NCBI RefSeq assembly: GCF_963506605.1
Contig: NC_083280.1
Location: 22,196,001-22,260,000, forward strand
Origin: Zootoca vivipara
Taxonomy: Eukaryota
DNA: 64,000 nucleotides
Direction: 5' to 3'
How positions within the stretch are numbered: the stretch's first letter is position 1; every line of letters starts with the position of its first letter. This document shows, piece after piece, positions 13,536 to 64,000 of this stretch. A program made the translations under genes and the position numbers. A model generated the notes under the pieces. It saw nothing but the letters and a program-made list of their open reading frames with translations. It was not told where the DNA came from and ran no database searches.

Positions 13536-15592
13536 CAAAAAGTAAAAAAGCTACCAAAGAGGACCAAGCACACCTGAAAGAAGCAGTCACCTCCTCTTCT
13601 CCTGAGAAAGATTTCTCATTTGCAAAGTTTGCATCTCCATTTAAAAGAGAGGCCATCGAAGCTGGCATTTATGTGAGCTCACCTGTGTATGAAAAGCCGG
13701 AAACCCTAGACTTTGCCATTGGGATAGCTGAAACCTATTTCTCCACCGAGTATTGGAAAAGTAATCTTTCCAGCGAGTCTGTTCAACCAAAGGAGGAACT
13801 TGAAAGGGACAAGAATGAAGGTATATGTTGCATGGGTCAAAAGGTCGATGATGCTCTATTTTGCAAAGAGAGAGAACTAGTAGCTGGAAATTCTCTTTCT
13901 CCAGGACAACAAGAAGTAACTAGCATTAGATCTCATGCAGTAGTAAATAGTACTATAACCAATTCCCCACTACCTGATGTATCTTCACCTACCTGTAGTG
14001 ATGTCCGTGACTTTCATTCCATACCAGCCATACAAGATAGTGACATTTCTCATCTGATCAGTGAGGTCTCTTTAACAGACGAGAGTGATGTGGGCAGTTC
14101 TGTCTCAGCACTGATAGGACAGTTTGATGTCACAAATGACCAGACTAAGTTGACTGTTGTTCCAAGTCCTCCTGGAATTAGCAAAAAGATTGACAATAGG
14201 AAGCCTGCACATGTACCACAGATGTCTCCAAGTGATCAGAATACATCTTTTGACCACAAGTCTCCTAGTGTAATGCCAAAAATTACTATGATATCAACCC
14301 CTCAGACAACAGAGTGTTCACTGTACACAATTATCCATGAGGCTTCGCTTTCTCCAGCCTCTCACCAAGCATCAATTGGCAAACCTCCTTGCAAGGACAC
14401 AACGTATGTTGAAGAAGATACTTGTCCGGTGTTTTCTTGCATTTCACCTGGGCTAAATGCAAGCACTAAAAGGAAGTGTGGAGCCAACTGGAACTCTCTT
14501 AGCAATAGCAACTCTTGCATCTCTGACAACTCAGATTTGGAACATACAATAGTTGTCCCTTTCACTTGTGTAAATTCTACAGGCAGCAGCCTAATGGAAG
14601 TTGATGGAGAGCTGCAGGACCTATTGATAACTGCCTATGAATATAAGAGAGAAGATATGAGCCAAGTTGCTTCTCCTCTGAAACTTAAGCATAATCAGGA
14701 CACTCTGTACTATGACAGTTCAGTCTGCAGAAACCTAACTAGTGAGGATCTCTCCAACACCAACCTACTTGAAGACTTCAAGTTCAGGAGCAAGAAGAAT
14801 CAATATCTTCCTTACCCAGAACATCAGTGTGTTGATCTTTTGTACCAAAATTATTTGCACATTTCAGACACCAAAAATGAATGGTTAAACATCTCTCCTA
14901 CAGGTAACATGGAGAACTCTCCTGCTCTTAAGCATTCTCTGCCTTCTCCCTCAGCTCAAAAACAACCAAGTCCTTGTAAATCCAAGAGCCTTGGAGACTT
15001 AACATCAGAAGACATCTCGTGCAATTTTGAAAGCAAGTACAAGTATATCAGCAGAGGTTTCATTACATCTGGCATGAGAGACAAGATGGTGACGGCTCTG
15101 AAGGCTAAGAGACCACAGGCTACAGATTCCCTGACGGAACAGTTACGAAAGCTAGTGTCCTTTGATCAGGAGGACAGCAGCTGCCAGTCATTTTGTAACA
15201 AGCAGGATGACGATTGCCCTAAAATGTTGGTCAGAAAACTGTCGTCCAGGAGTCAGAGCAGAGTGAGAAACATTGCTAGTCGTGCCAGGGAGCGACAAGA
15301 AGCCAATAAGCAGAAACTTTCTAATGCTAGCAGTAATGTAGCAGACATAGTCCTTAGAAATAAGCCTCTTGTCCCTCCTCACATTATCAATAGACATTCC
15401 ACTGGCTCTTACATAGCAAGCTATCTGGATAACTTCAATACAGACAATCTGGTGGACCGAGGGGTTCCGGAGGGTGCATGCACATCATTGCGCTATGCGT
15501 ACCATGACCGGTTTTATACAGATGACTCTCTTTTAGAGGCCAAGCCAAGCGAAGACGATAAACCAGAAATCTATTTTCTCCTGAGACTGTAA
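13536..15592 (+). CDS. PLCH1: PLCH1 terminal coding exon (long Ser-rich tail, ends …DDKPEIYFLLRL*)
   Basis: tatag| acceptor at 13535, in frame with ORF 13673-15592. Conserved blocks PSPCKSKSLGDLTSEDI, LTEQLRKLVSFDQED and LVRKLSSRSQSRVRNIASRA, plus the C-terminal PEIYFLLRL that I recognise as PLCH1. Confidence 0.93.
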
Positions 15593-41991: not shown

Positions 41992-42126
41992 NNNNNNNNN
42001 NNNNNNNNNNNNNNNNNNNNNNNNNNNNNNNNNNNNNNNNNNNNNNNNNNNNNNNNNNNNNNNNNNNNNNNNNNNNNNNNNNNNNNNNNNNNNNNNNNNN
42101 NNNNNNNNNNNNNNNNNNNNNNNNNN
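41992..42126. other. Assembly gap (135 N)
   Basis: Run of N. Confidence 1.
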
Positions 42127-43007: not shown

Positions 43008-43690
43008 TCATAGAATCCTAGAGTTGGAAGAGAGCACAAGGGCCATCCAGTCCAACCCCCTGCCAAGCAGGAAACACCACCAAAGCATTCTTGACATATG
43101 CCTGTCAAGCCTCTGCTTAAAGACCTCCAAAGAAGGAGACTCCACCACACTCCTTGGTAGCAAATTCCACTGCCGAACAGCTCTTACTGTCAGGAAGTTC
43201 TTCCTAATGTTTAGGTGGAATCTTCTTTCTTGTAGTTTGAATCCATTGCTCCGTGTCCGCTACCCTGGAGCAGCAGAAAACAACCTTTCTCCCTCCTCTA
43301 TATGACATCCTTTTATATATTTGAACATGGCTATCATATCACCCCTTAACCTTCTCTTCTGCAGGCTAAACATACCCAGCTCCCTAAGCCGTTCCTCATA
43401 AGGCATCGTTTCCAGGCCTTTGACCATTTTGGTTGCCCTCCTCTGGACACATTCCAGCTTGTCAATATTCTTCTTGAACTGTGGTGCCCAGAACTGGACA
43501 CAGTACTCCAGGTGAGGTCTGACCAGAGAAGAATACAGTGGTACTATTACTTCCCTTGATCTAGATGCTATACTCCCATTGATGCAGCCCAGAATTGCAT
43601 TGGCTTTTTTAGCTGCTACATCACACTGTTGACTCATGTCAAGTTTGTGGTCTACCAAGACTCCTAGATCCTTTTCACATGTACTGCTCT
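43008..43690 (-). mobile_element. CR1 LINE 3' fragment
   Basis: Highly similar to 20978-21665; EKDLGVLVD…LVRPHLEYC. Confidence 0.95.
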
Positions 43691-44592
43691 CAATTTGTTT
43701 TTCAACTCCTCCTGGGCACAATAGTCGCAGAATCTCAACAACAACAAATTTTTTTTGAGCTACTTTTAAGGATATTCGCCAGAAAATCAATACATCTGGG
43801 TTTTTTTGATATCGGGAATTCTGCCCGGACGCGATTTCCGACGGACGAATCCAAGATATGTCTGGGAAGTCCCAGACATACAACAGGGATACTGAACCCA
43901 GTAGGTCCAATGCCATCACCTTCTTGCCCCACTACTTCCACCCACAGAATTTCTAATTTTCAACCCTAGAACTGGCTATCACTGGTGGAAGAACCACCAG
44001 TGGTAGTTTTACACCCATGGAACTATTCAAGGGCCTAGCAGAGGTGTCTGTGGTAGATGTCCTCCTTCATTGACAAAACTATCTGTGGAGAGGCATCTTC
44101 ACTTCTTAAGCATCTGAAATCACTGTCACTGGTTCTGGGGAATTGGATTGCAGTGTTTATTTACTTGCAGATTTTGCTGGCTCTTCCACTACGTTCAAAG
44201 AGGTTTCCTACATCTTCTTCTGTGAAATATTTTTTTCCTGCCTCTGCAGGGAGATGATTGGCTTATGCTTATGTTTTAACTTTTTCTGTTGTCTGTGTCT
44301 AATTAAATCAGGAGAAAAGTGTTCAGACTTAATGGATGCAGTTATTAAGGTATTAATGTCTTGCTTTCCACTACAGAAGACATTTGAGACCCATGGTATG
44401 GGTGGTGCTAGCTTAGAGCAAGAGCATTATTCAATTCTGAAACTCCCTTGAATAACAAGTTCCTTCGCTGAGTTCCTTTAAACTTTGGTTTCGCCCTCAT
44501 CCGGGATTCTAAATACTCTGTTTCCTGATTTAATATACATTCTAAAGTCTGCTTTGTGAAATCCCAGGAACCTGCTTACAGCGTTGCTGAAC

Positions 44593-46168
44593 ATGAACTT
44601 GAAATTGACTTATCTTCTCCTAGCTCTATGCACAGCCATCATATTCATCTTGGTCTGGGCTTTCCAAAACAGAGGAGGGAAGCCCATGCTTTGCGACAGC
44701 CATCTTCAGGAGATGGGATGGGAGGAAAGAGGCCATGGAATCTACAGCCAGGTATTTGCTGATTTAACTCCGGAAGAGATCATGGAAGTGAAGATCTACC
44801 TGCAGTACAACCTGGGGGTGCCATTGGTAGAACCTCCTCAAGCCAAACCATCGGACAACTGCATTTTTTCTATCACCCTTCAGCTTCCTCCCAAAGCTGA
44901 AGTGCTGCAATTCTTGGACCACCAAGGGACCAGGCCCTCGCGGCAAGCTCTGGCTGTACTCCATTTTGGAAACCAGGAGCACCCAAATGTCACAGAGTTT
45001 GTGGTAGGTCCTCTTCCAAAGCCAACGTACCACCAAGATGTCACAGTGCAGAAGTATGGAGGGAAGTTGCCTTACTACAGAAGGTTTTTTTTGGAGAATG
45101 AGCTGAGAGAGATCCATACTTTCTTGAGGAATAGGGAATACCCCAAGGATCCAAACTTTATGCAGAAAGTGCTTTATTACAATGGAAGCAAGTATGGATA
45201 CTCCTATGGATTACCACCTGGACTAAAATCAGGAGACCGGAAAATCTGGGTTGCTCATTTCCAGAATGTCCCTGGTAGTTACCTGCATCCAGTAGGATTT
45301 GAAGTCCATATGGATCTCAGCAGCCTAGACGTTTCTCATTGGAAGGTGCTAAAAGTCTTCTATAATGGACAGTACTTTGAGGACATGGAAGATATTGAGA
45401 GACAATTCATTTCAGGACATGTTAAAGTAGCCAAGGTCAAAAAGGCTCCTTTGGATGGAGGCTATTCCTCACTGAAGCAGAGGGTTCCCCACCAGAGACT
45501 AGGCCCCTTGTACTATGAACCTCGTGGTCCCCGCTACCGCATCTGGAATAACCAGGTTTTCTTCATGTCCTGGAGTTTTGCCTTTGGCATAGATGCCAAT
45601 AGGGGGCCACGTATCTTTGATGTAAGGTTTAAGGGTGAGAGGATAGTTTATGAGTTAAGCTTGCAAGACGGAGGTTCCATCTATGGCTCCAACAATCCAG
45701 CGTCAATGCTGACCAGGTACATGGACTTAAGCTTTGGCATTGGTTCAAGTGGCTCCACTCTCACCCAAGGTGTGGATTGTCCTTACCTGGCTACTTATTT
45801 GGACAGGCACTATTTTCTTGATTCCTCGTTGCCTGTCACTCGCAAACACTCTATCTGCATCTTTGAGCAGAATGCTGAGGTCCCTGTGCGAAGACATTAT
45901 GACCGCTCAGAGCCTCCGTTTTACGGAGGGTTGGTCGATTCCGTTCTTGTCTTTAGGTCCATATCTTCAGTTGCTAATTATGATTATGTTTGGGATTTTA
46001 AATTTCATCAAAATGGAGCTGTTGGTGTTGCGATTCATGCAAGTGGGTACATTCAATCTGCTTTTTATTTTGGCGATGCCTTGGAATTTGGAAACAGAGT
46101 TGAAGAGTGGGCACTGGGAGACATTCACACTCACAACATTAATTTCAAGGTGGATATGGACATTGGTG
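44593..46168 (+). CDS. AOC3: AOC3/AOC2-like copper amine oxidase, first coding exon, copy 1 (divergent variant)
   Basis: N-terminal hydrophobic anchor, VFADLT, GLKSGDR, catalytic Asp in RYMD, TPQ motif NYDY and Cu-ligand HTH. Ends at DIG-G|gtaagt, the position of the AOC3 exon 1 boundary. Confidence 0.9.
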
Positions 46169-47074
46169 GTAAGTCTATGCCTCTTTTGTAACTTTTATGG
46201 ATTGCAGTGATTTCTATTGATGGTAGCGGCTGACTTGCTGCCAGCTAATAGCTGTTTTTTAAGTGGTTCTGAGGTTATTTTGTTTCCCAGTTCTGCAAAT
46301 GGACCCATTTTCATGTTCCATGGAGTATTCATGAGTATACGTTTTCCCACCTCACCTGGCAGAATGCTGCATCATCCTAAGATGCAGAAAATAGGTGAAG
46401 CGTGTGGTGTATGTGTAGGAGGGAATTGTTGTGTGAGAAAGTTTAGGCCGATTCTGGAACCTTGGAGACACAGAGGCATGTTCTGAACACAAGTTGTGTC
46501 AGGGTTTCCCCCCTGGATGCCTAATAGAGAAGCACAATCTGTTCGTGTGTTAATGCTGTGCACCCACCCATCCTATGCTCAGGTTCCATATATGTGTAAA
46601 TAAAACCATACATTCTATAGACATCACCATCTCCACTGACCTTCATTCCATGGAAACAGAACCCTGGGGAAGCGCTTGGCATTCATGGAGTCTCTCCTCA
46701 AAATAGGTCTTGAGGGAGGCAAATCCATGTCTGCTTCTAATTCATTCAATGAATTATGAATGCACATCATTGTCAAAGTATTATATGGGCCCTTTGGGGC
46801 AACCGGTTGAGCCCTGCATATTTTAAGACCAAGGTCCATCTAGTGGCAGGCAGGCGGCGGGGGCCGGTCACTTCACTTTTGGTAGTGGAACAGAGCAATA
46901 TTCACAGCAGGGTTAAAAGGCTTCCCATTGAATAGATTCGGGAGTGAAATTAAAACACAATAGTACATTCTGAGAGCATTTTGTTGTGATTACTTTATAT
47001 TAATCAGAGAAGTATATGCTCCTCAGAAATAGATGCACATGAGCTAATACATAATTGATGGAGATTGCCCCCAT

Positions 47075-47251
47075 CAGGGCAGTCTCGAGCAGGTCACGCG
47101 CCCTGGCGCTGAGGGGCGGAGATCGCTCCGGTGCCCCTACCCTCGCAGGGCGCAGTATGGCTTCCGCGCGGCTTTGCCGTGCAGCGCCCTGCCTACTGGC
47201 CTGGCGCCCTGGCGCCCCGCGCCACCAGGACTCTACCTAGAGCCGGCCCTG
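47075..47251. mobile_element. GC-rich hAT-type MITE
   Basis: cagggc…gccctg ends; TSD GCCCCCAT. Confidence 0.8.
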
Positions 47252-50115
47252 GCCCCCATGTAAGTTAGGTTCATTCATTTCAAGGGGTCTTCTCTGAGGA
47301 AATCTTAGTTTAATGCCAACCGTTGAACGCTACCTTGCTCTCTTTTTTATATGAACTACTTTTTCTCATCCATAGTCAATTTGTAGACATGATTTACCTA
47401 TTTAATTTGTCATGTTAAAGTCCCATCTTTCTTCCAAGATTAGGGGGTTGCACTAGATGACCCTCGGGGTCCCTTCCAGTTCTATGATTCTATGAAACTC
47501 AATCTAAATTGTGTACTTGGCATTCTGCAAAAATCTTCCGTCTAGCCACTTGACCAAGATCTCCCTCATTTTCCAGTAAGGGCTGCTTTGTTGCCATGGG
47601 CAGCCATCCAGGGAGGCCCGGGAGCCATGGGACCAGCCAGTAGCCAGGGCTGAAGCCTAAGGGTTGTATTCAGTGCAGAACAAAGGACATGCTAGACATC
47701 CGGGGCAAAGACCAAGACAACAACAAAGGACTAAACAAAAGAAGGGACTAAGGTGTAACCAGTAATACTGGGGCACACCAAAAGATCTTGTTATTTGAGC
47801 AAAGCTTAGCAAGAAATAGTCTTTCCTGTCCAGGATAACCCAATGGCTAGTTTGGAGTCAGCCCATGGCCTGAAGGTACTTCATTAAGAAACTCAGACTT
47901 GCCATTCAATGGTTCACCACATGGGAGTATTGCACCGAGATCGAGCAGTTCCTGACAATTACGTGTCTTCAGGTCATGTCTTGAGGAATCCATCCACTCT
48001 GCTTTCTCATTCAATTTTAGAGTAGCTGCTGTTTTAAAAAGAATTCAAATACTACTGCTTCTTTGGCTATGACCCCCTGAAATCCTGCTGATCCAGGACA
48101 ACAGAGAAGGATAAATCTCTTCTCCACATAAAATAGTTTCCTTTTATGGCGATGATTGTTTCCCACCAGAGGGTGGTAAAACCACTTGAGATCCGAACTG
48201 CCATTGAATTACATAAAGGCATACTATGCAGATTTCTTCACGACCTTTCAGAAGCTGTGAAAGTGCTAAGGGCACAATCCAAAGAAAGCTCTTGACTTTA
48301 ATGAAATCTAAGCATGAGTGTGCTGTCTCCATTGAAATCATCCAGCGGTCCTTTACCTCTTCCTTTGACCTTTACCTTTACCTATATGCACTGTAGATTT
48401 AAAGCACGTTTAAAGTATTTCCTTCCTCCCGAGGAATTCTGAGAGCTGTAGTTTGTTGTGGGTGCTGGGAAATGGTAGTTGAGATGGACAAACTACAGTT
48501 CTCAGGATTCTAAGTTAAGGCAGTGCCATGCTGCTTTCACTTTCCTCTTCTCAACTCAATCTTCCTCTGCCCCCCGGGGGATGTACATGACAAGATACTT
48601 TCATTCCCCCTGTATTGGAGTAAGATTCAACTGCCAATCAAACTGGCTTCAGCATGTGCTTTGGGGCTGGGTGCCATCTTGTCCTTCACCTCAGGCAGCG
48701 AAATGTCTTGAGCTGACCCTGCCACTCACGGGGCTTGTTAGGCGAATCTCACCCAGTGATTTGCCAGGATTCAATAAGTTAGCTACTTTTAATTTCTCAG
48801 CTCTGAATTCTGGCAACCTGTCCCTTGCAAATCTTGTTTTAAGCTGCAGGGCACAAGCAAAACCAGCCAGGTAACAATTCAAGAATTACCAGAACATCAA
48901 ACTTGCTGTGCCTTTCTCAGAAATTGTGTGGATAATTCAGTGGTTAATTAATTTAAGGCCAGTGCTATGCAGGCTTACTGACAAACACAGGACTCTTGCT
49001 GGCTAGTGTTTGGTGTCTCCTGATGCTTCCTTCCTTGCAGTCTCCTGCCTCTCTCTCAATGATCTTTGATGAACAGCCTTTCCCTCCCAACACATGACAT
49101 TCTCTCTGACCCAGATATTCAGCATATAAGGAAATTAGAGGCTCACTGCGCAGCTCAGCTTCAGTGTTTTCTCCAGTCCACAGAAGAATAGGACTGGAAA
49201 TGAAAATCAAGTGTAAATGCATGGAAGCCGATACGCAAGTCAAAACAACAGTGTGAGATCCACACCAGACATTTTAAGCACGATGATACCACTTGGACAG
49301 TTATAGAGAACCCTTGGAACTGATTTAGGATGGATCATAATAGCTCAGTGGTAGCACATCTCCACATAGGGCCGGAAGCAAATCTCCACCTGAGATTACT
49401 TATGCCAGCTCCAAGATGTTATATAGAGAAAGCCCCATTGTGGGCCTCTCTGTTGAATGAATGAGTCTTGAGCCTCCAGAATGTCTAATATTGAACCCTA
49501 AGAGTGCATGGTGGTGGTGAAAGAACCACTCTACATCCATGGAACAATTCACGGGCATAGCTGAGGTGTTTGTGGCAGACGTGCTCTTTCATTGGCAAAG
49601 CTCCGTCAATAGACAGGCACTTCCATACCCTCCTAACCAGCTCCAGTTACTGTTCTGAGGGTGTGGCCTCAGTAAAGTTAAGTGCTGCATCAGCTAGAAG
49701 ACTCAACCACTAGGAAGTTCTGCTTTTTTTCTTGCAAAGCTTCCTCTTCCAAACATTTTTTGCACCCTCTACATAAAGAAGATTGCTTAAGAGTGGTTTG
49801 TTGTATCTCGGTAGGCTGCATCTAACTCAATTAGGAACAAAGGTGTTCAGAGGACATGACATAACAGGTTATCAAGGCTTGAAGGAAAATATCACTGCAT
49901 TCCTATTTACAGAAACATTGAGCTGCATCATACCGTCGGTGGTTGCTTAGATGAAAAATATTACTGATGTTTTGAAGCTCACTTGCATAGCAGGTCTTTC
50001 CCCGAAACTTTGGTTTCACCCTCATCCGGGATTCAAATACTCTGTTTGCTGATTCAATCTGCATTCTACAGTCTGCTTTGTGAAATCCTAGGAGCCTGCT
50101 TACAGCGTTCTGAAC

Positions 50116-51691
50116 ATGAACATGAAATTGACTTATCTTCTTCTAGCTCTATGCACAGCCGTCATATTCATCTTGGTCTGGGCTTTCCAAAACAGAGGAG
50201 GGAAGGCCATGCTTTGTGACAGCCATCTCCAGGAGATGGGACTGGAAGAAAGAGGCCATGGAATCTACAGCCAGGTATTTGCTGATTTAACTCCGGAAGA
50301 GATCATGGAAGTGAAGATCTACCTGCAATACAACCTGGGGGTGCCATTGGTAGAACCTCCTCAAGCCAAGCCATCGGACAACTGCATTTATTCTATCACC
50401 CTTCAGCTTCCTCCCAAAGCTGAAGTGCTGCAATTCTTGGACCACCAAGGGACCAGGCCCTCGCGGCAAGCTCTGGCTGTACTCCATTTTGGAAACCAGG
50501 AGGACCCAAATGTCACAGAGTTTGTGGTAGGTCCTCTTCCAAAACCAATGTACCACCAAGATGTCACAGTGCAGAAGTATGGAGGGAAGTTGCCTTACTA
50601 CAAAAGGTTTTTCTTAAACAATGAGTTCAAAGAAATCCTTAATTTCCTGAAGAACAAAGAATACCCCAAGGCTCCAAACTTTATGCAGAAAGTACTATAT
50701 TACAATGGAAGCAATCTCAGAAACTTCCGTGCATTACCACCTGGACTAAAATCAGGAGACCGGAGAATCTGGGTTGCTCATTTCCAGAATGTCCCTGGTA
50801 GTTACCTGCATCCAGTAGGATTTGAAGTCCATGTGGATCTCAGCAGCCTAGACGTTTCTCATTGGAAGGTGCTAAAAGTCTTCTATAATGGACAGTACTT
50901 TGAGGACATGGACGATATTGAGAGACAGTTCATTACGGGACATGTTAAAGTAGCCAAGGTCAAAAAGGCTCCTTTGGATGGAGGCTATTCCTCACTGAAG
51001 CAGAGGGTTCCCCACCAGAGACTAGGCCCCTTGCACTATGAACCTCGTGGTCCCCGCTACCGCATCTGGAATAACCAGGTTTTCTTCATGTCCTGGAGTT
51101 TTGCCTTTGGCATAGATGCCAATAGGGGGCCACACATCTTTGATGTAAGGTTTAAGGGTGAGAGGATAGTTTATGAGTTAAGCTTGCAAGATGCATCTGC
51201 CATCTATGGCTCCAACACTCCAGCGGCAATGTTGAACAGATTCATGGACCTAAGCATTGGCATTGGTTCAAGTGGCTCCACTCTCATCCAAGGTGTGGAT
51301 TGTCCTTACCTGGCTACTTATTTGGACAGGCACTATTTTCTTGATTCCTCGTTGCCTGTCACTCGCAAAAACTCTATCTGCATCTTTGAGCAGAATGCTG
51401 AGGTCCCTGTGCGACGCCATTATGACCGCTCAGAGCCTCCGTTTTACGGAGGGTTGGTCGATTCTGCTCTGGTCTTCAGGTCCATATCTACAGTTGGTAA
51501 TTATGATTATATTTGGGATTTCATGTTTCATCAAAATGGAGCTGTTGGTGTTGCGATCCATGCAAGTGGGTACATTCAATCTGCTTTTTACTTTGGTGAT
51601 GCCTTGGAATTTGGAAACAGAGTTGAAGAGTGGACATTGGGAACAATTCACACTCACAACATTAATTTCAAGGTGGATATGGACATTGGTG
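50116..51691 (+). CDS. AOC3: AOC3/AOC2-like amine oxidase first coding exon, copy 2
   Basis: Intact 525-codon frame with GNYDY and IHTH. Donor g|gtaagt at 51692. Confidence 0.9.
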
Positions 51692-51826
51692 GTAAGTCTA
51701 TGCCTCTTTTGTAATTTTTATGGATTGCAGTGTTTTCTATTGCTGGTAAGTGGATGTCTCTTTTGTGACTTTTCTGTGCCTGTTTGTGGCTTGCTTGCTT
51801 GCTGACAACTTATAGCCCATACAGAA

Positions 51827-52315
51827 AGAATCATAGAATCATAGAATGGGGGACTTGGAAGTGACTCCAAGGGTCCTCTAGTCCAACCCCCTGTAATGCA
51901 GGAGCCAAAGCTATTTAATCCCTGACAAGTGGTCCTCCAACTTCTGTTTTAAAACCTTCAAGGAAGGAGAGCCCCCCAACTTTCAAGATGGTGCATTGAA
52001 CTGTTGAACATCTACTCTCAAGAAATTCTTCCCATTGTTTATCCATAATCGCCTTTCCTGTAATTTGAATTCATTGGTTTGTTTCCTATCCTTTGGAGTA
52101 CCAGAAAACAAGCTTTCTGCATCCTCCATGTGACAGCCCTTCAGATACTTTTAAGAAGGCTATCGTATCTTCTCTATGTCTCCTTTCTTCCAGGGTAAAC
52201 CTATCCAACTCCCTCAACCATTCCTCATAAGCCTTGGTTTCCAGACCCTTGATCATCTTCATTGCTCTGCTCTGCACACATTCCAGTTGTCAATGTCCTC
52301 CTTAAACTGTTGCTC
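51827..52315 (-). mobile_element. Older CR1 3' fragment, co-duplicated in every tandem unit (also ~55550-56038, ~59273-59760, ~62984-63465)
   Basis: agaatcatagaatcat tail; degenerate QSRAMKMIKGLE…YEEWLREL. Confidence 0.85.
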
Positions 52316-53838
52316 CTTAAAATATGTTTTCCTTGTTACGGTTTACACAAACAGCTTACCAGTTACTTCCTTTTCATGCCACTCTCTCTGCCAAGAGCAA
52401 TGGAAAAACAGGCATTCAAGGCTCAGGGAACAACAGTTTGCAGGACACCTGAGCTGCTGCTCGTCTCCAACACTTGGAGTTTGCTACCACAGACATAGAT
52501 TTTGGGCTGTCCTGAAGCCAAGTACAGCTTTCGGCCTGTAGGTATTCTTGTGACTTGTATGTTTATAGAATCTGCAATCTCTTGAGATTTCCGCAACAGA
52601 CTCACTCATTCTGTGTAAGGCCAGGTGGGAGAGGCTGGAGCTGATGCCTTGCTGTGCCTTTCTCAGAAATTGTGTGGATAATTCAGTGGTTAATTAATTT
52701 AAGGCCAGTGCTATGCAGGCTTACTGACAAACACAGGACTCTTGCTGGCTAGTGTTTGGTGTCTCCTGATGCTTCCTTCCTTGCAGTCTCCTGCCTCTCT
52801 CTCAATGATCTTTGATGAACAGCCTTTCCCTCCCAACACATGACATTCTCTCTGACCCAGATATTCAGCATATAAGGAAATTAGAGGCTCACTGCGCAGC
52901 TCAGCTTCAGTGTTTTCTCCAGTCCACAGAAGAATAGGACTGGAAATGAAAATCAAGTGTAAATGCATGGAAGCCGATACGCAAGTCAAAACAACAGTGT
53001 GAGATCCACACCAGACATTTTAAGCACGATGATACCACTTGGACAGTTATAGAGAACCCTTGGAACTGATTTAGGATGGATCATAATAGCTCAGAGGTAG
53101 AACATCTCCACCTGAGATTACTTATGCCAGCTCCAAGCTGTTATATAGAGAAAGCCCCATTGTGGGCCTCTCTGTTGAATGAATGAGTCTTGAGCCTCCA
53201 GAATGTCTAATACTGAACCCTAAGAGTGCATGGTGGTGGTGAAAGAACCACTCTACATCCATGGAACAATTCACGGGCATAGCTGAGGTGTTTGTGGCAG
53301 ACGTGCTCTTTCATTGGCAAAGCTCCGTCAATAGACAGGCACTTCCATACCCTCCTAACCAGCTCCAGTCACTGTTCTGAGGGTGTGGCCTAAGTAAAGT
53401 TAAGTGCTGCATCAGCTAGAAGACTCAACCACTAGGAAGTTCTGCTTTTTTTTCTTGCAAAGCTCCCTCTTCCAAACATTTTTTGCACCCTCTACATAAA
53501 GAAGATTGCTTAAGAGTGGTTTGTTGTATCTTGGTAGGCTGCATCTAACTCAATTAGGAACAAAGGTGTTCAGAGGACATGACATATCAGGTTATCAAGG
53601 CTTGAAGGAAAATATCACTGCCTTCCTCTTTACAGAAACATTGAGCTGCATCATACCGTCGGTGGTTGCTTAGATGAAAAATATTACTGAGGTTTTGAAG
53701 CTCACTTGCATAGCAGGTCTTTTCCCGAAACTTTGGTTTCACCCTCATCCGGGATTCAAATACTCTGTTTGCTGATTCAATCTGCATTCTACAGTCTGCT
53801 TTGTGAAATCCTAGGAGCCTGCTTACAGCGTTCTGAAC

Positions 53839-55414
53839 ATGAACATGAAATTGACTTATCTTCTTCTAGCTCTATGCACAGCCGTCATATTCATCTTGGT
53901 CTGGGCTTTCCAAAACAGAGGAGGGAAGGCCATGCTTTGTGACAGCCATCTCCAGGAGATGGGACTGGAAGAAAGAGGCCATGGAATCTACAGCCAGGTA
54001 TTTGCTGATTTAACTCCGGAAGAGATCATGGAAGTGAAGATCTACCTGCAATACAACCTGGGGGTGCCATTGGTAGAACCTCCTCAAGCCAAGCCATCGG
54101 ACAACTGCATTTATTCTATCACCCTTCAGCTTCCTCCCAAAGCTGAAGTGCTGCAATTCTTGGACCACCAAGGGACCAGGCCCTCGCGGCAAGCTCTGGC
54201 TGTACTCCATTTTGGAAACCAGGAGGACCCAAATGTCACAGAGTTTGTGGTAGGTCCTCTTCCAAAACCAATGTACCACCAAGATGTCACAGTGCAGAAG
54301 TATGGAGGGAAGTTGCCTTACTACAAAAGGTTTTTCTTAAACAATGAGTTCAAAGAAATCCTTAATTTCCTGAAGAACAAAGAATACCCCAAGGCTCCAA
54401 ACTTTATGCAGAAAGTACTATATTACAATGGAAGCAATCTCAGAAACTTCCGTGCATTACCACCTGGACTAAAATCAGGAGACCGGAGAATCTGGGTTGC
54501 TCATTTCCAGAATGTCCCTGGTAGTTACCTGCATCCAGTAGGATTTGAAGTCCATGTGGATCTCAGCAGCCTAGACGTTTCTCATTGGAAGGTGCTAAAA
54601 GTCTTCTATAATGGACAGTACTTTGAGGACATGGACGATATTGAGAGACAGTTCATTACGGGACATGTTAAAGTAGCCAAGGTCAAAAAGGCTCCTTTGG
54701 ATGGAGGCTATTCCTCACTGAAGCAGAGGGTTCCCCACCAGAGACTAGGCCCCTTGCACTATGAACCTCGTGGTCCCCGCTACCGCATCTGGAATAACCA
54801 GGTTTTCTTCATGTCCTGGAGTTTTGCCTTTGGCATAGATGCCAATAGGGGGCCACGTATCTTTGATGTAAGGTTTAAGGGTGAGAGGATAGTTTATGAG
54901 TTAAGCTTGCAAGATGCATCTGCCATCTATGGCTCCAACACTCCAGCGGCAATGTTGAACAGATTCATGGACCTAAGCATTGGCATTGGTTCAAGTGGCT
55001 CCACTCTCATCCAAGGTGTGGATTGTCCTTACCTGGCTACTTATTTGGACAGGCACTATTTTCTTGATTCCTCGTTGCCTGTCACTCGCAAAAACTCTAT
55101 CTGCATCTTTGAGCAGAATGCTGAGGTCCCTGTGCGACGCCATTATGACCGCTCAGAGCCTCCGTTTTACGGAGGGTTGGTCGATTCTGCTCTGGTCTTC
55201 AGGTCCATATCTACAGTTGGTAATTATGATTATATTTGGGATTTTATGTTTCATCAAAATGGAGCTGTTGGTGTTGCGATCCATGCAAGTGGGTACATTC
55301 AATCTGCTTTTTACTTTGGTGATGCCTTGGAATTTGGAAACAGAGTTGAAGAGTGGACATTGGGAACAATTCACACTCACAACATTAATTTCAAGGTGGA
55401 TATGGACATTGGTG
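53839..55414 (+). CDS. AOC3: AOC3/AOC2-like amine oxidase first coding exon, copy 3
   Basis: Intact and nearly identical to copy 2 (GPRIF vs GPHIF). Same donor. Confidence 0.9.
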
Positions 55415-57561
55415 GTAAGTCTATGCCTCTTTTGTAATTTTTATGGATTGCAGTGTTTTCTATTGCTGGTAAGTGGATGTCTCTTTTATGACTTTTCTGT
55501 GCCTGTTTGTGGCTTGCTTGCTTGCTGACAGCTTATAGCCCATACAGAAAGAATCATAGAATCATAGAATGGGGGACTTGGAAGTGACTCCAAGGGTCCT
55601 CTAGTCCAACCCCCTGTAATGCAGGAGCCAAAGCTATTTAATCCCTGACAAGTGGTCCTCCAACTTCTGTTTTAAAACCTTCAAGGAAGGAGAGCCCCCC
55701 AACTTTCAAGATGGTGCATTGAACTGTTGAACATCTACTCTCAAGAAATTCTTCCCATTGTTTATCCATAATCGCCTTTCCTGTAATTTGAATTCATTGG
55801 TTTGTTTCCTATCCTTTGGAGTACCAGAAAACAAGCTTTCTGCATCCTCCATGTGACAGCCCTTCAGATACTTTTAAGAAGGCTATCGTATCTTCTCTAT
55901 GTCTCCTTTCTTCCAGGGTAAACCTATCCAACTCCCTCAACCATTCCTCATAAGCCTTGGTTTCCAGACCCTTGATCATCTTCATTGCTCTGCTCTGCAC
56001 ACATTCCAGTTGTCAATGTCCTCCTTAAACTGTTGCTCCTTAAAATATGTTTTCCTTGTTACGGTTTACACAAACAGCTTACCAGTTACTTCCTTTTCAT
56101 GCCACTCTCTCTGCCAAGAGCAATGGAAAAACAGGCATTCAAGGCTCAGGGAACAACAGTTTGCAGGAAACCTGAGCTGCTGCTCGTCTCCAACACTTGG
56201 AGTTTGCTACCACAGACATAGATTTTGGGCTGTCCTGAAGCCAAGTACAGCTTTCGGCCTGTAGGTATTCTTGTGACTTGTATGTTTATAGAATCTGCAA
56301 TCTCTTGAGATTTCCGCAACAGACTCACTCATTCTGTGTAAGGCCAGGTGGGAGAGGCTGGAGCTGATGCCTTGCTGTGCCTTTCTCAGAAATTGTGTGG
56401 ATAATTCAGTGGTTAATTAATTTAAGGCCAGTGCTATGCAGGCTTACTGACAAACACAGGACTCTTGCTGGCTAGTGTTTGGTGTCTCCTGATGCTTCCT
56501 TCCTTGCAGTCTCCTGCCTCTCTCTCAATGATCTTTGATGAACAGCCTTTCCCTCCCAACACATGACATTCTCTCTGACCCAGATATTCAGCATATAAGG
56601 AAATTAGAGGCTCACTGCGCAGCTCAGCTTCAGTGTTTTCTCCAGTCCACAGAAGAATAGGACTGGAAATGAAAATCAAGTGTAAATGCATGGAAGCCGA
56701 TACGCAAGTCAAAACAACAGTGTGAGATCCACACCAGACATTTTAAGCACGATGATACCACTTGGACAGTTATAGAGAACCCTTGGAACTGATTTAGGAT
56801 GGATCATAATAGCTCAGAGGTAGAACATCTCCACCTGAGATTACTTATGCCAGCTCCAAGCTGTTATATAGAGAAAGCCCCATTGTGGGCCTCTCTGTTG
56901 AATGAATGAGTCTTGAGCCTCCAGAATGTCTAATACTGAACCCTAAGAGTGCATGGTGGTGGTGAAAGAACCACTCTACATCCATGGAACAATTCACGGG
57001 CATAGCTGAGGTGTTTGTGGCAGACGTGCTCTTTCATTGGCAAAGCTCCGTCAATAGACAGGCACTTCCATACCCTCCTAACCAGCTCCAGTCACTGTTC
57101 TGAGGGTGTGGCCTAAGTAAAGTTAAGTGCTGCATCAGCTAGAAGACTCAACCACTAGGAAGTTCTGCTTTTTTTTCTTGCAAAGCTCCCTCTTCCAAAC
57201 ATTTTTTGCACCCTCTACATAAAGAAGATTGCTTAAGAGTGGTTTGTTGTATCTTGGTAGGCTGCATCTAACTCAATTAGGAACAAAGGTGTTCAGAGGA
57301 CATGACATATCAGGTTATCAAGGCTTGAAGGAAAATATCACTGCCTTCCTCTTTACAGAAACATTGAGCTGCATCATACCGTCGGTGGTTGCTTAGATCA
57401 AAAATATTACTGAGGTTTTGAAGCTCACTTGCATAGCAGGTCTTTTCCCGAAACTTTGGTTTCACCCTCATCCGGGATTCAAATACTCTGTTTGCTGATT
57501 CAATCTGCATTCTACAGTCTGCTTTGTGAAATCCTAGGAGCCTGCTTACAGCGTTCTGAAC

Positions 57562-59137
57562 ATGAACATGAAACTGACTTATCTTCTTCTAGCTCTATGC
57601 ACAGCCGTCATATTCATCTTGGTCTGGGCTTTCCAAAACAGAGGAGGGAAGGCTATGGTTTGTGACAGCCATCTTCAGGAGATGGGACTGGAAGAAAGAG
57701 GCCATGGAATCTACAGCCAGGTATTTGCTGATTTAACTCCGGAAGAGATCATGGAAGTGAAGATCTACCTGCAATACAACCTGGGGGTGCCATTGGTAGA
57801 ACCTCCTCAAGCCAAGCCATCGGACAACTGCATTTATTCTATCACCCTTCAGCTTCCTCCCAAAGTTGAAGTGCTGCAATTCTTGGACCACCAAGGGACC
57901 AGGCCCTCGCGGCAAGCTCTGGCTGTACTCCATTTTGGAAACCAGGAGGACCCAAATGTCACAGAGTTTGTGGTAGGTCCTCTTCCAAAGCCAATGTACC
58001 ACCAAGATGTCACAGTGCAGAAGTATGGAAGGAAGTTGCCTTACTACAAAAGGTTTTTCTTAAACAATGAGTTCAAAGAAATCCTTAATTTCCTAAAGAA
58101 CAAAGAATACCCCAAGGCTCCAAACTTTATGCAGAAAGTACTATATTACAATGGAAGCAATCTCAGAAACTTCCGTGCATTACCACCTGGACTAAAATCA
58201 GGAGACCGGAGAATCTGGGTTGCTCATTTCCAGAATGTCCCTGGTAGTTACCTGCATCCAGTAGGATTTGAAGTCCATGTGGATCTCAGCAGCCTAGACG
58301 TTTCTCATTGGAAGGTGCTAAAAGTCTTCTATAATGGACAGTACTTTGAGGACATGGACGATATTGAGAGACAGTTCATTACGGGACATGTTAAAGTAGC
58401 CAAGGTCAAAAAGGCTCCTTTGGATGGAGGCTATTCCTCACTGAAGCAGAGGGTTCCCCACCAGAGACTAGGCCCCTTGCACTATGAACCTCGTGGTCCC
58501 CGCTACCGCATCTGGGATAACCAGGTTTTCTTCATGTCCTGGAGTTTTGCCTTTGGCATAGATGCCAATAGGGGGCCACACATCTTTGATGTAAGGTTTA
58601 AGGGTGAGAGGATAGTTTATGAGTTAAGCTTGCAAGATGCATCTGCCATCTATGGCTCCAACACTCCAGCGGCAATGTTGAACAGATTCATGGACCTAAG
58701 CATTGGCATTGGTTCAAGTGGCTCCACTCTCATCCAAGGTGTGGATTGTCCTTACCTGGCTACTTATTTGGACAGGCACTATTTTCTTGATTCCTCATTG
58801 CCTGTCACTCATAAAAACTCTATCTGCATCTTTGAGCAGAATGCTGAGGTCCCTGTGCGACGCCATTATGACCGCTCAGAGCCTCCGTTTTACGGAGGGT
58901 TGGTCGATTCTGCTCTGGTCTTCAGGTCCATATCTACAGTTGGTAATTATGATTATATTTGGGATTTCATGTTTCATCAAAATGGAGCTGTTGGTGTTGC
59001 GATCCATGCAAGTGGGTACATTCAATCTGCTTTTTACTTTGGTGATGCCTTGGAATTTGGAAACAGAGTTGAAGAGTGGACATTGGGAACAATTCACACT
59101 CACAACATTAATTTCAAGGTGGATATGGACATTGGTG
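57562..59137 (+). CDS. AOC3: AOC3/AOC2-like amine oxidase first coding exon, copy 4
   Basis: Intact, with private changes (AMVC, PKVEV, VTHKN). Same donor. Confidence 0.9.
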
Positions 59138-61277
59138 GTAAGTCTATGCCTCTTTTGTAATTTTTATGGATTGCAGTGTTTTCTATTGCTGGTAAGTGGA
59201 TGTCTCTTTTGTGACTTTTCTGTGCCTGTTTGTGGCTTGCTTGCTTGCTGACAACTTATAGCCCATACAGAAAGAATCATAGAATCATAGAATGGGGGAC
59301 TTGGAAGTGACTCCAAGGGTCCTCTAGTCCAACCCCCTGTAATGCAGGAGCCAAAGCTATTTAATCCCTGACAAGTGGTCCTCCAACTTTTGTTTTAAAA
59401 CCTTCAAGGAAGGAGAGCCCCCCAACTTTCAAGATGGTGCATTGAACTGTTGAACATCTACTCTCAAGAAATTCTTCCCATTGTTTAGCCATAATCGCCT
59501 TTCCTGTAATTTGAATTCATTGGTTTGTTTCCTATCCTTTGGAGTACCAGAAAACAAGCTTTCTGCATCCTCCATGTGACAGCCCTTCAGATACTTTTAA
59601 GAAGGCTATCGTATCTTCTCTATGTCTCCTTTCTTCCAGGGTAAACCTATCCAACTCCCTCAACCATTCCTCATAAGCCTTGGTTTCCAGACCCTTGATC
59701 ATCTTCATTGCTCTGCTCTGCACACATTCCAGTTGTCAATGTCCTCCTTAAACTGTTGCTCCTTCTTAAAATATGTTTTCCTTGTTACGGTTTACACGAA
59801 CAGCTTACCAGTTACTTCCTTTTCATGCCACTCTCTCTGCCAAGAGCAATGGAAAAACAGGCATTCAAGGCTCAGGGAACAACAGTTTGCAGGAAACCTG
59901 AGCTGCTGCTCGTCTCCAACACTTGGAGTTTGCTACCACAGACATAGATTTTGGGCTGTCCTGAAGCCAAGTACAGCTTTCGGCCTGTAGGTATTCTTGT
60001 GACTTGTATGTTTATAGAATCTGCAATCTCTTGAGATTTCAGCAACAGACTCACTCATTCTGTGTAAGGCCAGGTGGGAGAGGCTGGAGCTGATGCCTTG
60101 CTGTGCCTTTCTCAGAAATTGTGTGGATAATTCAGTGGTTAATTTAAGGCCAGTGCTATGCAGGCTTACTGACAAACACAGGACTCTTGCTGGCTAGTGT
60201 TTGGTGTCTCCTGGTGCTTCCTTCCTTGCAGTCTCCTGCCTCTCTCTCTATGATCTTTGATTAACAGCCTTTCCCTCCCAACACATGACATTCTCTCTGA
60301 CCTAGATATTCAGCATATAAGGAAATTAGAGGCTCACTGCGCAGCTCAGCTTCAGTGTTTTCTCCAGTCCACAGAAGAATAGGACTGGAAATGAAAATCA
60401 AGTGTAAATGCATGGAAGCCGATACGAAAACAACAGTGTGAGATCCACACCAGACATTTTAAGCACGATGATACCACTTGGACAGTTATAGAGAACCCTT
60501 GGAACTGATTTAGGATGGATCATAATAGCTCAGAGGTAGAACATCTCCACCTGAGATTACTTATGCCAGCTCCAAGCTGTTATATAGAGAAAGCCCCATT
60601 GTGGGCCTCTCTGTTGAATGAATGAGTCTTGAGCCTCCAGAATGTCTAATACTGAACCCTAAGAGTGCATGGTGGTGGTGAAAGAACCACTCTACATCCA
60701 TGGAACAATTCACGGGCATAGCTGAGGTGTTTGTGGCAGACGTGCTCTTTCATTGGCAAAGCTCCGTCAATAGACAGGCACTTCCATACCCTCCTAACCA
60801 GCTCCAGTTACTGTTCTGAGGGTGTGGCCTCAGAAAAGTTAAGTGCTGCATCAGCTAGAAGACTCAACCACTAGGAAGTTCTGCTTTTTTTTCTTGCAAA
60901 GCTTCCTCTTCCAAACATTTTTTGCACCCTCTACATAAAGAAGATTGCTTAAGAGTGGTTTGTTGTATCTCGGTAGGCTGCGTCTAACTCAATTAGGAAC
61001 AAAGGTGTTCAGAGGACATGACATATCAGGTTATCAAGGCTTGAAGGAAAATATCACTGCATTCCTATTTACAGAAACATTGAGCTGCATCATACCGTCG
61101 GTGGTTGCTTAGATCAAAAATATTACTGAGGTTTTGAAGCTCACTTGCATAGCAGGTCTTTTCCCGAAACTTTGGTTTCACCCTCATCCGGGATTCAAAT
61201 ACTCTGTTTGCTGATTCAATCTGCATTCTACAGTCTGCTTTGTGAAATCCTAGGAGCCTGCTTACAGCGTTCTGAAC

Positions 61278-62853
61278 ATGAACATGAAATTGACTTATCT
61301 TCTTCTAGCTCTATGCACAGCCGTCATATTCATCTTGGTTTGGGCTTTCCAAAACAGAGGAGGGAAGGCCATGCTTTGTGACAGCCATCTTCAGGAGATG
61401 GGACTGGAAGAAAGAGGCCATGGAATCTACAGCCAGGTATTTGCTGATTTAACTCCGGAAGAGATCATGGAAGTGAAGATCTACCTGCAATACAACCTGG
61501 GGGTGCCATTGGTAGAACCTCCTCAAGCCAAGCCATCGGACAACTGCATTTATTCTATCACCCTTCAGCTTCCTCCCAAAGCTGAAGTGCTGCAATTCTT
61601 GGACCACCAAGGGACCAGGCCCTCGCGGCAAGCTCTGGCTGTACTCCATTTTGGAAACCAGGAGGACCCAAATGTCACAGAGTTTGTGGTAGGCCCTCTT
61701 CCAAAACCAATGTACCACCAAGATGTCACAGTGCAGAAGTATGGAAGGAAGTTGCCTTACTACAAAAGGTTTTTCTTAAACAATGAGTTCAAAGAAATCC
61801 TTAATTTCCTGAAGAACAAAGAATACCCCAAGGCTCCAAACTTTATGCAGAAAGTACTATATTACAATGGAAGCAATCTCAGAAACTTCCGTGTGTTACC
61901 ACCTGGACTAAAATCAGGAGACCGGAAAATCTGGGTTGCTCATTTCCAGAATGTCCCTGGTAGTTACCTGCATCCAGTAGGATTTGAAGTCCATGTGGAT
62001 CTCAGCAGCCTAGACGTTTCTCATTGGAAGGTGCTAAAAGTCTTCTATAATGGACAGTACTTTGAGGACATGGACGATATTGAGAGACAGTTCATTACGG
62101 GACATGTTAAAGTAGCCAAGGTCAAAAAGGCTCCTTTGGATGGAGGCTATTCCTCACTGAAGCAGAGGGTTCCCCACCAGAGACTAGGCCCCTTGCACTA
62201 TGAACCTCGTGGTCCCCGCTACCGCATCTGGGATAACCAGGTTTTCTTCATGTCCTGGAGTTTTGCCTTTGGCATAGATGCCAATAGGGGGCCACACATC
62301 TTTGATGTAAGGTTTAAGGGTGAGAGGATAGTTTATGAGTTAAGCTTGCAAGATGCATCTGCCATCTATGGCTCCAACACTCCAGCGGCAATGTTGAACA
62401 GATTCATGGACCTAAGCATTGGCATTGGTTCAAGTGGCTCCACTCTCATCCAAGGTGTGGATTGTCCTTACCTGGCTACTTATTTGGACAGGCACTATTT
62501 TCTTGATTCCTCGTTGCCTGTCACTCGCAAAAACTCTATCTGCATCTTTGAGCAGAATGCTGAGGTCCCTGTGCGACGCCATTATGACCGCTCAGAGCCT
62601 CCGTTTTACGGAGGGTTGGTCGATTCTGCTCTGGTCTTCAGGTCCATATCTACAGTTGGTAATTATGATTATATTTGGGATTTTATGTTTCATCAAAATG
62701 GAGCTGTTGGTGTTGCGATCCATGCAAGTGGGTACATTCAATCTGCTTTTTACTTTGGCGATGCCTTGGAATTTGGAAACAGAGTTGAAGAGTGGACATT
62801 GGGAACAATTCACACTCACAACATTAATTTCAAGGTGGATATGGACATTGGTG
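61278..62853 (+). CDS. AOC3: AOC3/AOC2-like amine oxidase first coding exon, copy 5
   Basis: Intact, with changes FRVLP and DRKIW. Same donor. Confidence 0.9.
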
Positions 62854-64000
62854 GTAAGTCTATGCCTCTTTTGTAATTTTTATGGATTGCAGTGTTTTCT
62901 ATTGCTGGTAAGTGGATGTCTCTTTTGTGACTTTTCTGTGCCTGTTTGTGGCTTGCTTGCTGACAGCTTATAGCCCATACAGATAGAATCATGGAATGGG
63001 GGACTTGGAAGTGACTCCAAGGGTCCTCTAGTCCAACCCCCTGTACTGCAGGAGCCAAAGCTATTTAATCCCTGACAAGTGGTCCTCCAACTTCTGTTTT
63101 AAAACCTTCAAGGAAGGAGAGCTCACCAGCTTTCAAGATGGTGCATTGAACTGTTGAACATCTACTCTCAAGAAATTCTCCCCATTGTTTAGTCATGATC
63201 TCCTTTCCTGTAATTTGAATCCATTGGTTTGTTTCCTATCCTCTGAAGCACCAGAAAACAAGCTTTCTGCATCCTCCATGTGACAGCCTTTCAGATACTT
63301 GTAAGAAGGCTATCGTATCTTCTCTATGTCTCCTTTCTTCCAGGGTAAATATATCCAACTCCATCAACCATTCCCCATAAGCCTTGGTTTCCAGACCCTT
63401 GATCATCTTCATTGCTCTGCTCTGCACACATTCCAGTTGTCAATGTCCTCCTTAAACTGTTGCTCCTTCTTAAAATATGTTTTCCTTGTTACGGTTTACA
63501 CAAACAGCTTACCAGAAGTTACTTCCTTTTCATACCACTCTCTCTGCCAAGAGCAATGGAAAAACAGGCATTCAAGGCTCAGGGAACAATAGTTTGCAGG
63601 ACACCTGAGCTGCTGCTCGTCTCCAACACTTGGAGTTTGCTACCACAGACATAGATTTTGGGCTGTCCTGAAGCCAAGTACAGCTTTCGGCCTGTAGGTA
63701 TTCTTGTGACTTGTATGTTTATAGAATCTGCAATCTCTTGAGATTTCAGCAACAGACTCACTCATTCTGTGTAAGGCCAGGTGGGAGAGGCTGGAGCTGA
63801 TGCCTTGCTGTGCCTTTCTCAGAAATTGTGTGGATAATTCAGTGGTTAATTTAAGGCCAGTGATATGCAGGCTTACTGACCAACACAGGACTCTTGCTGG
63901 CTACTGTTTGGTGTCTCCTGATGCTTACTTCCTTGCAGTCTCCTGCCTCTCTCTCTATGATCTTTGATTAACAGCCTTTCCCTCCCAACACATGACATTC

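Follow-up and report, generated by a model that had tools for sequence, protein, structure and literature searches.

Tandem AOC3-like first exons in the lizard Zootoca vivipara: a candidate multiple-variable-first-exon locus for copper amine oxidases

Why should a chromosome carry copy after copy of the large first exon of an enzyme gene, with none of the exons that complete the enzyme lying between them? The question is raised by a 64,000-nt stretch of the forward strand of Zootoca vivipara (assembly GCF_963506605.1, contig NC_083280.1, positions 22,196,001 to 22,260,000; hereafter the window, with positions counted from its first base), which carries the large first exon of a gene for an AOC3-like copper amine oxidase, and that exon alone, in at least five intact copies. 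Copper amine oxidases (VAP-1/AOC3, AOC2, and the serum amine oxidases) have been studied as separate four-exon genes. An earlier note, made from the letters of the window, had read the copies as alternative first exons that are spliced to one shared set of constant exons beyond the window. The analysis reported here favors this reading with a probability of roughly 0.68; the window would then be the 5′ part of a multiple-variable-first-exon cluster of AOC3-like exons, in the style of UGT1A and GCNT2.

Anatomy of the array

The open reading frame (ORF) listing of the window shows five frames on the + strand, each of 532 codons counted from the ATG, arranged head to tail from 44.6 to 62.9 kb. 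The exon copies within them measure 1,576 nt in every case from the ATG to the last exon base and occupy positions 44593–46168 (copy 1), 50116–51691 (copy 2), 53839–55414 (copy 3), 57562–59137 (copy 4), and 61278–62853 (copy 5); the program-called frame of copy 1 opens at a TTG at 44584, and its ATG is at 44593. Start-to-start distances from copy 1 to copy 5 are 5523, 3723, 3723, and 3716 nt, with spacers of 3,947, 2,147, 2,147, and 2,140 nt. All five copies terminate in ...ATTGGTG|GTAAGTCTATGCCTCTTTTGTAA, a consensus phase-1 donor GTAAGT (46169–46174 in copy 1 and 51692–51697 in copy 2), past which read-through adds six codons, K-S-M-P-L-L, and then meets a stop. The first exons are thus tandem, paralogous, and of one orientation, and each begins at its own ATG and closes with a donor of the same phase, as in variable-first-exon clusters.

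A hydrophobic N-terminal signal anchor is encoded by every copy, and an Asp at residue 378, the sequence NYDY at residues 462–465, and the sequence HTH at residues 512–514 are present in five of five (in copy 1 at 45724–45726, 45976–45987, and 46126–46134, respectively, on the + strand). These align with the catalytic Asp, the NYDY motif of the topaquinone (TPQ) site, and the H-x-H of bovine serum amine oxidase (1TU5), which was a match in the structure-sequence comparison together with the human structure 1PU4. The ORFs and the 1TU5 alignment therefore confirm what the earlier note had described for all five exons, from the ATG, anchor, and catalytic motifs to the common phase-1 donor and the stop in the intron. 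Exon 1 was matched by the Pfam domains N2 (PF02727, E = 2e-16) and N3 (PF02728, E = 3.4e-11) and by Cu_amine_oxid (PF01179, E = 5e-70), the last over profile positions 4–224 of 407 only, so that the exon accounts for half of the catalytic domain and not for the whole enzyme domain. The content of copy 1 is accordingly an ATG, a signal anchor, domains N2 and N3, and the first half of the catalytic domain. Two copper ligands are encoded per copy, both in the H-T-H at residues 512–514, and the third is not encoded in the window; this His lies in the motif HIPHAEDIPNT in the C terminus of the RefSeq proteins P0002, P0130, and P0140. With E = 0 and 89–100% identity between the exon copies and RefSeq proteins, chance resemblance is not an issue.

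To locate exons 2–4, tblastn searches of the 64-kb window were carried out with four full-length squamate homologues, and these matched residues 1 to ~530 only, five times over. Searches with the C-terminal 236–245 residues alone (E = 50, word size 2) returned only noise in the window. Constant exons are therefore absent between the variable exons and from the 44 kb upstream of them, and the statement of the earlier note that the 2.1-kb and 3.9-kb spacers lack exon 2–4 sequence was borne out.

Unit borders fall at 48902, 52648, 56371, and 60093. The spacer after copy 2 (51692–53838, + strand, 2,147 nt) consists of intron-like sequence plus the upstream region of copy 3, and the upstream spacer and putative promoter region of copy 2 (48902–50115, + strand) is 96.9% identical to 52648–53838. 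Throughout 62854–64000 (+ strand), the sequence after copy 5 keeps the register of the spacer that follows copy 4, so the array extends past the end of the window; the next border extrapolates to ~63.8 kb, where the earlier note had also placed the beginning of a further unit, and the next ATG to ~64,995, outside the window. For copy 1, the candidate core promoter and leader, that is, the proximal upstream region and 5′ untranslated region, lie at 44480–44592 (+ strand), where ~110 nt upstream of the ATG are conserved between copy 1 and copies 2–5, with the wider flank only 67% alike.

The constant part in protein models and RNA

Five predicted 501-residue RefSeq proteins on one 98.2-Mb record match the copies with 100% identity over the span from Met32 to the stop in the intron (P0003 for copy 1, P0123 for copy 2, P0124 for copy 3, P0121 for copy 4, and P0122 for copy 5). 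The same record holds, outside the window, a sixth model of exon 1 only (P0129, XP_060130204), and its sole full-length model (P0130, XP_060130205, 727 residues) bears the next accession. The protein sets of this assembly thus contain seven first exons (copies 1–5, P0129, and P0130) against one C-terminal part (that of P0130), the number of constant exons being read here from protein sets. An older RefSeq annotation of Zootoca describes a single gene with isoforms X1 (P0140) and X2 (P0002), which show 46 differences, all in the first ~510 residues, share their last 248 residues without change, and have first exons with 91% identity across the divergent portion. In X1 the first exon matches copy 3 at 98.9% identity, and the one in X2 belongs to another exon-1 lineage. 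Two lacertid models from outside the window, Zootoca X3 (P0127) and Lacerta agilis X2 (P0132), lack the same 24 residues (VSFSGDHLPETDPMERAISWGRYK) of the constant part, a loss that would correspond to an in-frame skip of a small constant exon, as modeled in both species.

The models of the present assembly begin at Met32 and lack the signal anchor (Met1 and Met32 are at 44593 and 44686 in copy 1, with the same arrangement in copies 2–5), whereas older models and those of other species begin at Met1. RNA from a related lizard bears on this choice: a contig that covers Met1 of copy 2 also takes in at least 79 nt before that ATG (50037–50152), which makes Met1 the likelier start.

The five 501-residue models embody an explanation of the array that differs from the one favored here, namely that each unit is a gene of its own for a truncated protein of 501 or 532 residues, composed of exon 1 and six intron-encoded residues; such a product could serve, without catalysis, in the membrane or in adhesion, or could modulate the full-length enzyme. 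For all five copies RefSeq has models of precisely this kind, and similar short AOC3-like models of 530–556 residues are common in squamates and birds. Such models are, however, what an annotation pipeline can be expected to produce when it fails to connect an exon 1 with exons far away. The proteins would end in the middle of the catalytic β-sandwich, at Pfam position 224 of 407, without the third copper ligand. No AATAAA or ATTAAA hexamer that could terminate such an mRNA occurs on the + strand of the 2.1-kb spacer. Every copy also has a perfect GTAAGT donor, and the donor position is used in a relative, as described below. Genes for truncated proteins are therefore considered a very improbable account of the array.

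The same pattern of differing N termini on one C terminus recurs in other sauropsids. In the gecko Paroedura picta, six isoforms (X1–X6; XP_077170033 to XP_077170038) are annotated for one "amine oxidase [copper-containing] 3-like" gene, in which the N-terminal ~524 residues show pairwise identities of 53.6–90.6% and the C-terminal 234–242 residues are identical from the junction GG|VKNSLV onward. Differing N termini on an identical C terminus of ~233–246 residues were also found in Elgaria (N termini 63% identical), Anolis (58%), Accipiter, Mycteria, and Heliangelus, and in a skink and a sea turtle ab initio models fuse two first exons before one C terminus. Some bird isoforms (P0164/P0165, P0187/P0190, and P0169–P0173) have an identical C-terminal part of 433–534 residues and differ only in their first ~140–280 residues, so that the variable unit of birds may be smaller than exon 1 of the lizard. 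It is conceivable, at somewhat less than even odds, that AOC2/AOC3-type genes ordinarily have a variable-first-exon layout throughout the sauropsids (lizards, part of the snakes, turtles, and birds). Were this so, AOC2-like and AOC3-like first exons (54–63% identity) would share one set of exons 2–4, a single locus would yield oxidases with different substrate channels, a common half carrying the third ligand, and possibly mixed dimers, and the separate AOC2, AOC3, and AOC4 of mammals would be a derived resolution of this state, or the converse.

Evidence that a copy 1-type donor is spliced comes from the related lizard. One of its RNA contigs (2,033 nt) lies on 46036–46170 with two mismatches and then passes into exon-2 sequence: the loose end at the donor of copy 1 reads GTGAAAAATTCCCTGGTAGCC..., translated as VKNSLVA, and beyond the donor GTGAAAAATTCCCTGGTAGCCAATGACATG encodes VKNSLVANDM, the exact start of the constant part of P0002. 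In a close relative, exon 2 is therefore joined at the donor position of copy 1-type exons. Further contigs from that run fall on copy 2 as short fragments whose depth varies, as would be expected if several similar first exons were expressed.

A candidate 3′ splice site, TTACAG|CG, is found 17 nt upstream of each ATG and could allow an upstream donor to be spliced into the next copy, with a stop after two codons. It was not taken as a used acceptor, because a contig of the relative runs unspliced through it at 50037–50152. A joint between 49851 and 50037 in one contig of the relative was likewise not taken as an intron of the 5′ untranslated region, having noncanonical ends (GG..AA) and 21 nt on its short side; it skips 185 nt and is possibly a deletion in the related lizard or an alignment artifact.

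Each unit comprises the conserved proximal upstream region, which may serve as its own promoter, an ATG, a first exon of 525 codons, and the common phase-1 donor. Encoded in the first exon are the anchor, D2, D3, and that half of the catalytic domain in which the TPQ tyrosine, the catalytic Asp, two of the three copper His residues, and the substrate channel are located. Under the favored reading, transcription would initiate at one unit and continue through the units downstream of it; since these have donors but no used acceptor, the cap-proximal donor is proposed to join a single exon-2 acceptor beyond the window. Each mRNA would in this way receive the same ~232 C-terminal residues, including the third copper His in HIPHAEDIPNT, and each of the five copies could be put to use.

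Age of the copies and genomic setting

Units 2–5 constitute a 3.7-kb tandem amplification that opens at 48902 and whose members have diverged by 0.2–2.2%. Units 2 and 3 are 99.8% identical over 3,723 nt, units 3 and 4 98.8%, and units 4 and 5 97.8%. All gap events among units lie in the spacers, and 21 exon sites vary among the young copies in a mosaic pattern. These sites separate copies 2–5 from one another (exon positions 1407 and 1482, near the donor, are examples), and within the final 150 nt of the exon eight sites (1443, 1476, 1482, 1519, 1522, and 1528–1530) distinguish copy 1 from copies 2–5. Judged by these identities, copies 2–5 are a very recent amplification of one putative variable exon together with its candidate promoter.

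Units so alike are hard to assemble in arrays, and the four near-identical ones might be an over-expansion of the assembly (for example, of haplotypes or collapsed reads placed in tandem), with fewer true copies in the animal. The 21 exon-site differences are structured and mosaic, however, and are accompanied by spacer indels, and the older Zootoca annotation independently has at least four loci of the same exon-1 type (P0001, P0126 with two accessions, and exon 1 of X1). Six DNA runs from three studies, moreover, contain 56–68% of the words sampled. Over-expansion is thus regarded as quite unlikely, and even with fewer copies the architecture would be preserved by copy 1 and one further copy without intervening exons 2–4.

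Among copies 2–4, exon divergence (0.2–1.0%) and spacer divergence (0.2–0.8%) are equal, and there is consequently no sign of selection on these copies, which are too young for it. Unit 5 is the only one with an excess of spacer divergence (2.6–2.7%) over exon divergence (0.6–1.0%). Because the proteins encoded by copies 2–5 differ at only 1–6 residues, their multiplication offers almost no protein diversity and at most dosage; in the proposed mechanism these copies would bring a change of dosage rather than of specificity, or copy-number variation. The notion of an enzyme family from one locus, put forward in the earlier note, accordingly does not hold for copies 2–5; diversity lies instead between copy 1, copies 2–5, and the lineages outside the window.

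The history of copy 1 is a different one. Its exon is 94.4% identical to that of copy 2, whereas its flanks are only 67–71% identical to the unit spacer, of which old copies at this level of identity are found upstream of copy 1 at 43008–43482 and 43945–44592. By this comparison the exon has been kept alike far beyond its flanks by selection, gene conversion, or both. Between copy 1 and copies 2–5, synonymous divergence (dS) is 0.10–0.12 and the ratio of nonsynonymous to synonymous divergence (dN/dS) 0.41–0.43, with no stop and no indel in 1,576 nt; when 88 substitutions were placed in neutral simulations, only 4.6% of sequences remained free of stops. Copy 1 is thus an older, diverged, and probably variable exon. 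Its differences from copies 2–5 cluster at residues 205–214 and include RYMDLSFGIG vs RFMDLSIGIG around the catalytic Asp, positions that probably line the substrate channel, as in VAP-1 structures. Diversity within the window therefore lies between copy 1 and the type of copies 2–5, with further exon-1 lineages outside. In a tree of first exons, lineages arose before Zootoca and Podarcis separated and are found intact in each genus, Zv_old_501 grouping with P. lilfordi 556 with support of 100/99.

Several points weigh against the cluster reading. Current RefSeq treats the copies as separate truncated genes and not as isoforms, and where isoforms are modeled, as in the other sauropsids, RefSeq models can rest on protein alignments rather than on RNA. 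The contig of the related lizard may derive from another exon-1 lineage that shares the 3′ end of copy 1, for example that of X2. The equal divergence of exon and spacer in copies 2–4 provides nothing that separates working exons from fresh, silent duplicates. Finally, three same-species RNA-seq runs gave zero reads on the 3′ end of copy 1 or on copy 2; since ~6% of each run was covered, from an unspecified tissue, these runs do not decide whether the exons are expressed. Of the donors that the earlier note had proposed for RNA mapping, the position at 46168 is joined to exon 2 in the related lizard, and the three Zootoca runs placed no reads on the exons.

Some of these points would be accounted for if the copies were silent partial-gene duplicates, in which exon 1 and its flank were copied and only the last copy, next to exons 2–4, makes enzyme. 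The upstream copies, above all copies 2–5, would then be silent or unproductive and would be intact through youth or through gene conversion from a working copy. The 97.8–99.8% identity of units 2–5 over 3.7 kb, an exon divergence no different from that of the spacer in copies 2–4, and the zero exon reads in the three runs are consistent with this, and the mosaic variants and the homogenized exon between diverged flanks fit gene conversion. Silent duplication does not, however, readily explain why copy 1 is old (dS ~0.11) and yet intact, with a dN/dS of 0.42, or why exon-1-only lineages are intact across lacertid genera. It is also at odds with the spliced contig of the related lizard and with the isoform models, in Zootoca and many other sauropsids, that place different first exons on one C-terminal part. 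It is, on balance, judged unlikely. The proposal that the copies are alternative first exons on shared constant exons is thus supported in part, and indirectly, by the isoform sets, the 7:1 count of models, the relative's contig, and the dN/dS of copy 1 against copies 2–5, with no reads on the exons in the three Zootoca RNA runs.

Upstream of the array, a 639-codon ORF at 13673–15592 (+ strand) was identified by sequence search as the large last coding exon of PLCH1 (phospholipase C eta-1), with identities of 61–67% to its closest squamate-type matches (including Crotalus and Pseudonaja) and 44–52% to the PLCH1 tails of birds; it had no Pfam match, and an Atlas look-up of the 639-residue product gave weak leads only. 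The array lies ~29 kb downstream of PLCH1 on the same strand, with copy 1 as the first unit after it. In Crotalus horridus, the PLCH1 model Chor_014364 is on one record with the AOC3-like models Chor_014359, Chor_014361, and Chor_014362, under neighboring gene numbers, and in Anolis one AOC3-like protein even bears the name of a PLCH1 isoform, a possible sign of read-through or of merged models. The association in Crotalus and Anolis indicates that the position downstream of PLCH1 is old in squamates. Four other long ORFs of the window gave no match in Pfam, and a run of 135 N is present at 41992–42126, 2.5 kb before the start of copy 1.

The 3.9-kb spacer after copy 1 contains a unique part (46226–48901, no strand assigned) without counterpart in the young units, with a dispersed repeat at ~46991–47590 and AATAAA/ATTAAA hexamers at 46599 and 46949. 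Within the sequence compared with the RNA runs, 46991–47590 is the only part with same-species reads, all of them partial fits with many loose ends and a joint that "goes back 219"; it looks like a dispersed repeat expressed from elsewhere and not like part of an oxidase transcript.

Comparison with known loci

The type of locus proposed here is well known, and such a layout was not found described in papers for copper amine oxidases: full-text literature searches returned no description of variable first exons in this family, and exon structure goes unmentioned in a 2025 survey of the family. The earlier note's claim that the architecture is undescribed stands as far as papers are concerned, but for several sauropsids the layout is already present in RefSeq, as automatic isoform models. 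The closest existing record is that of Paroedura picta X1–X6, an automatic annotation and not a described finding, in which a homologous squamate gene has six first exons, one C terminus, and the same junction; its first exons are 54–91% identical and thus far more diverged than copies 2–5 of Zootoca.

If the reading is correct, the membrane anchor, the substrate channel, and the TPQ site would reside on exchangeable first exons and the copper-completing C-terminal part would be shared, which would offer ready-made chimeras with which to identify the residues that govern substrate preference and would make mixed dimers a question. The "truncated" AOC3-like proteins of 500–556 residues in reptile and bird databases would be misannotated variable exons, and the assignment of AOC2/AOC3 orthology outside mammals would change.

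In mammals, AOC2, AOC3, and AOC4 form a tandem cluster whose paralogues are all complete genes of four exons, none of them sharing exons 2–4 with another. The lizard array resembles this cluster in protein family, in the boundary between exons 1 and 2, and in the generation of diversity by tandem duplication, but the duplicated unit in the lizard is exon 1 only.

Loci with the latter property are found in other families. UGT1A possesses multiple variable first exons (PMC1885805, PMC3325998), and UGT1, GCNT2, and PCDH have been listed as multiple-variable-first-exon clusters (PMC1885805). The Pcdh alpha and gamma clusters and GCNT2 share with the proposed lizard locus variable first exons whose cap-proximal donor is joined to shared constant exons. 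In Pcdh, the choice of exon is stochastic and dependent on CTCF and enhancers, a feature of that system. GCNT2 is similar in that a small set of very large first exons accounts for most of the protein, but it has only three of them. With UGT1A, the likeness extends to tandem, large, paralogous first exons in one orientation, each with a 5′ splice site and, putatively in the lizard, a promoter of its own, to a substrate-facing half in the variable exon, and, as proposed for the lizard, to one downstream constant set; both loci encode enzymes that act on small molecules. The first exons of UGT1A are well diverged and their use is proven by experiment, whereas four of the five lizard copies are near-identical and are known from sequence; the split between variable and constant parts falls between two domains in UGT1A and in the middle of the catalytic domain in the lizard. 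Should the proposed architecture hold, the copper amine oxidases would join UGT1 and GCNT2 in the short list of variable-first-exon enzyme clusters.

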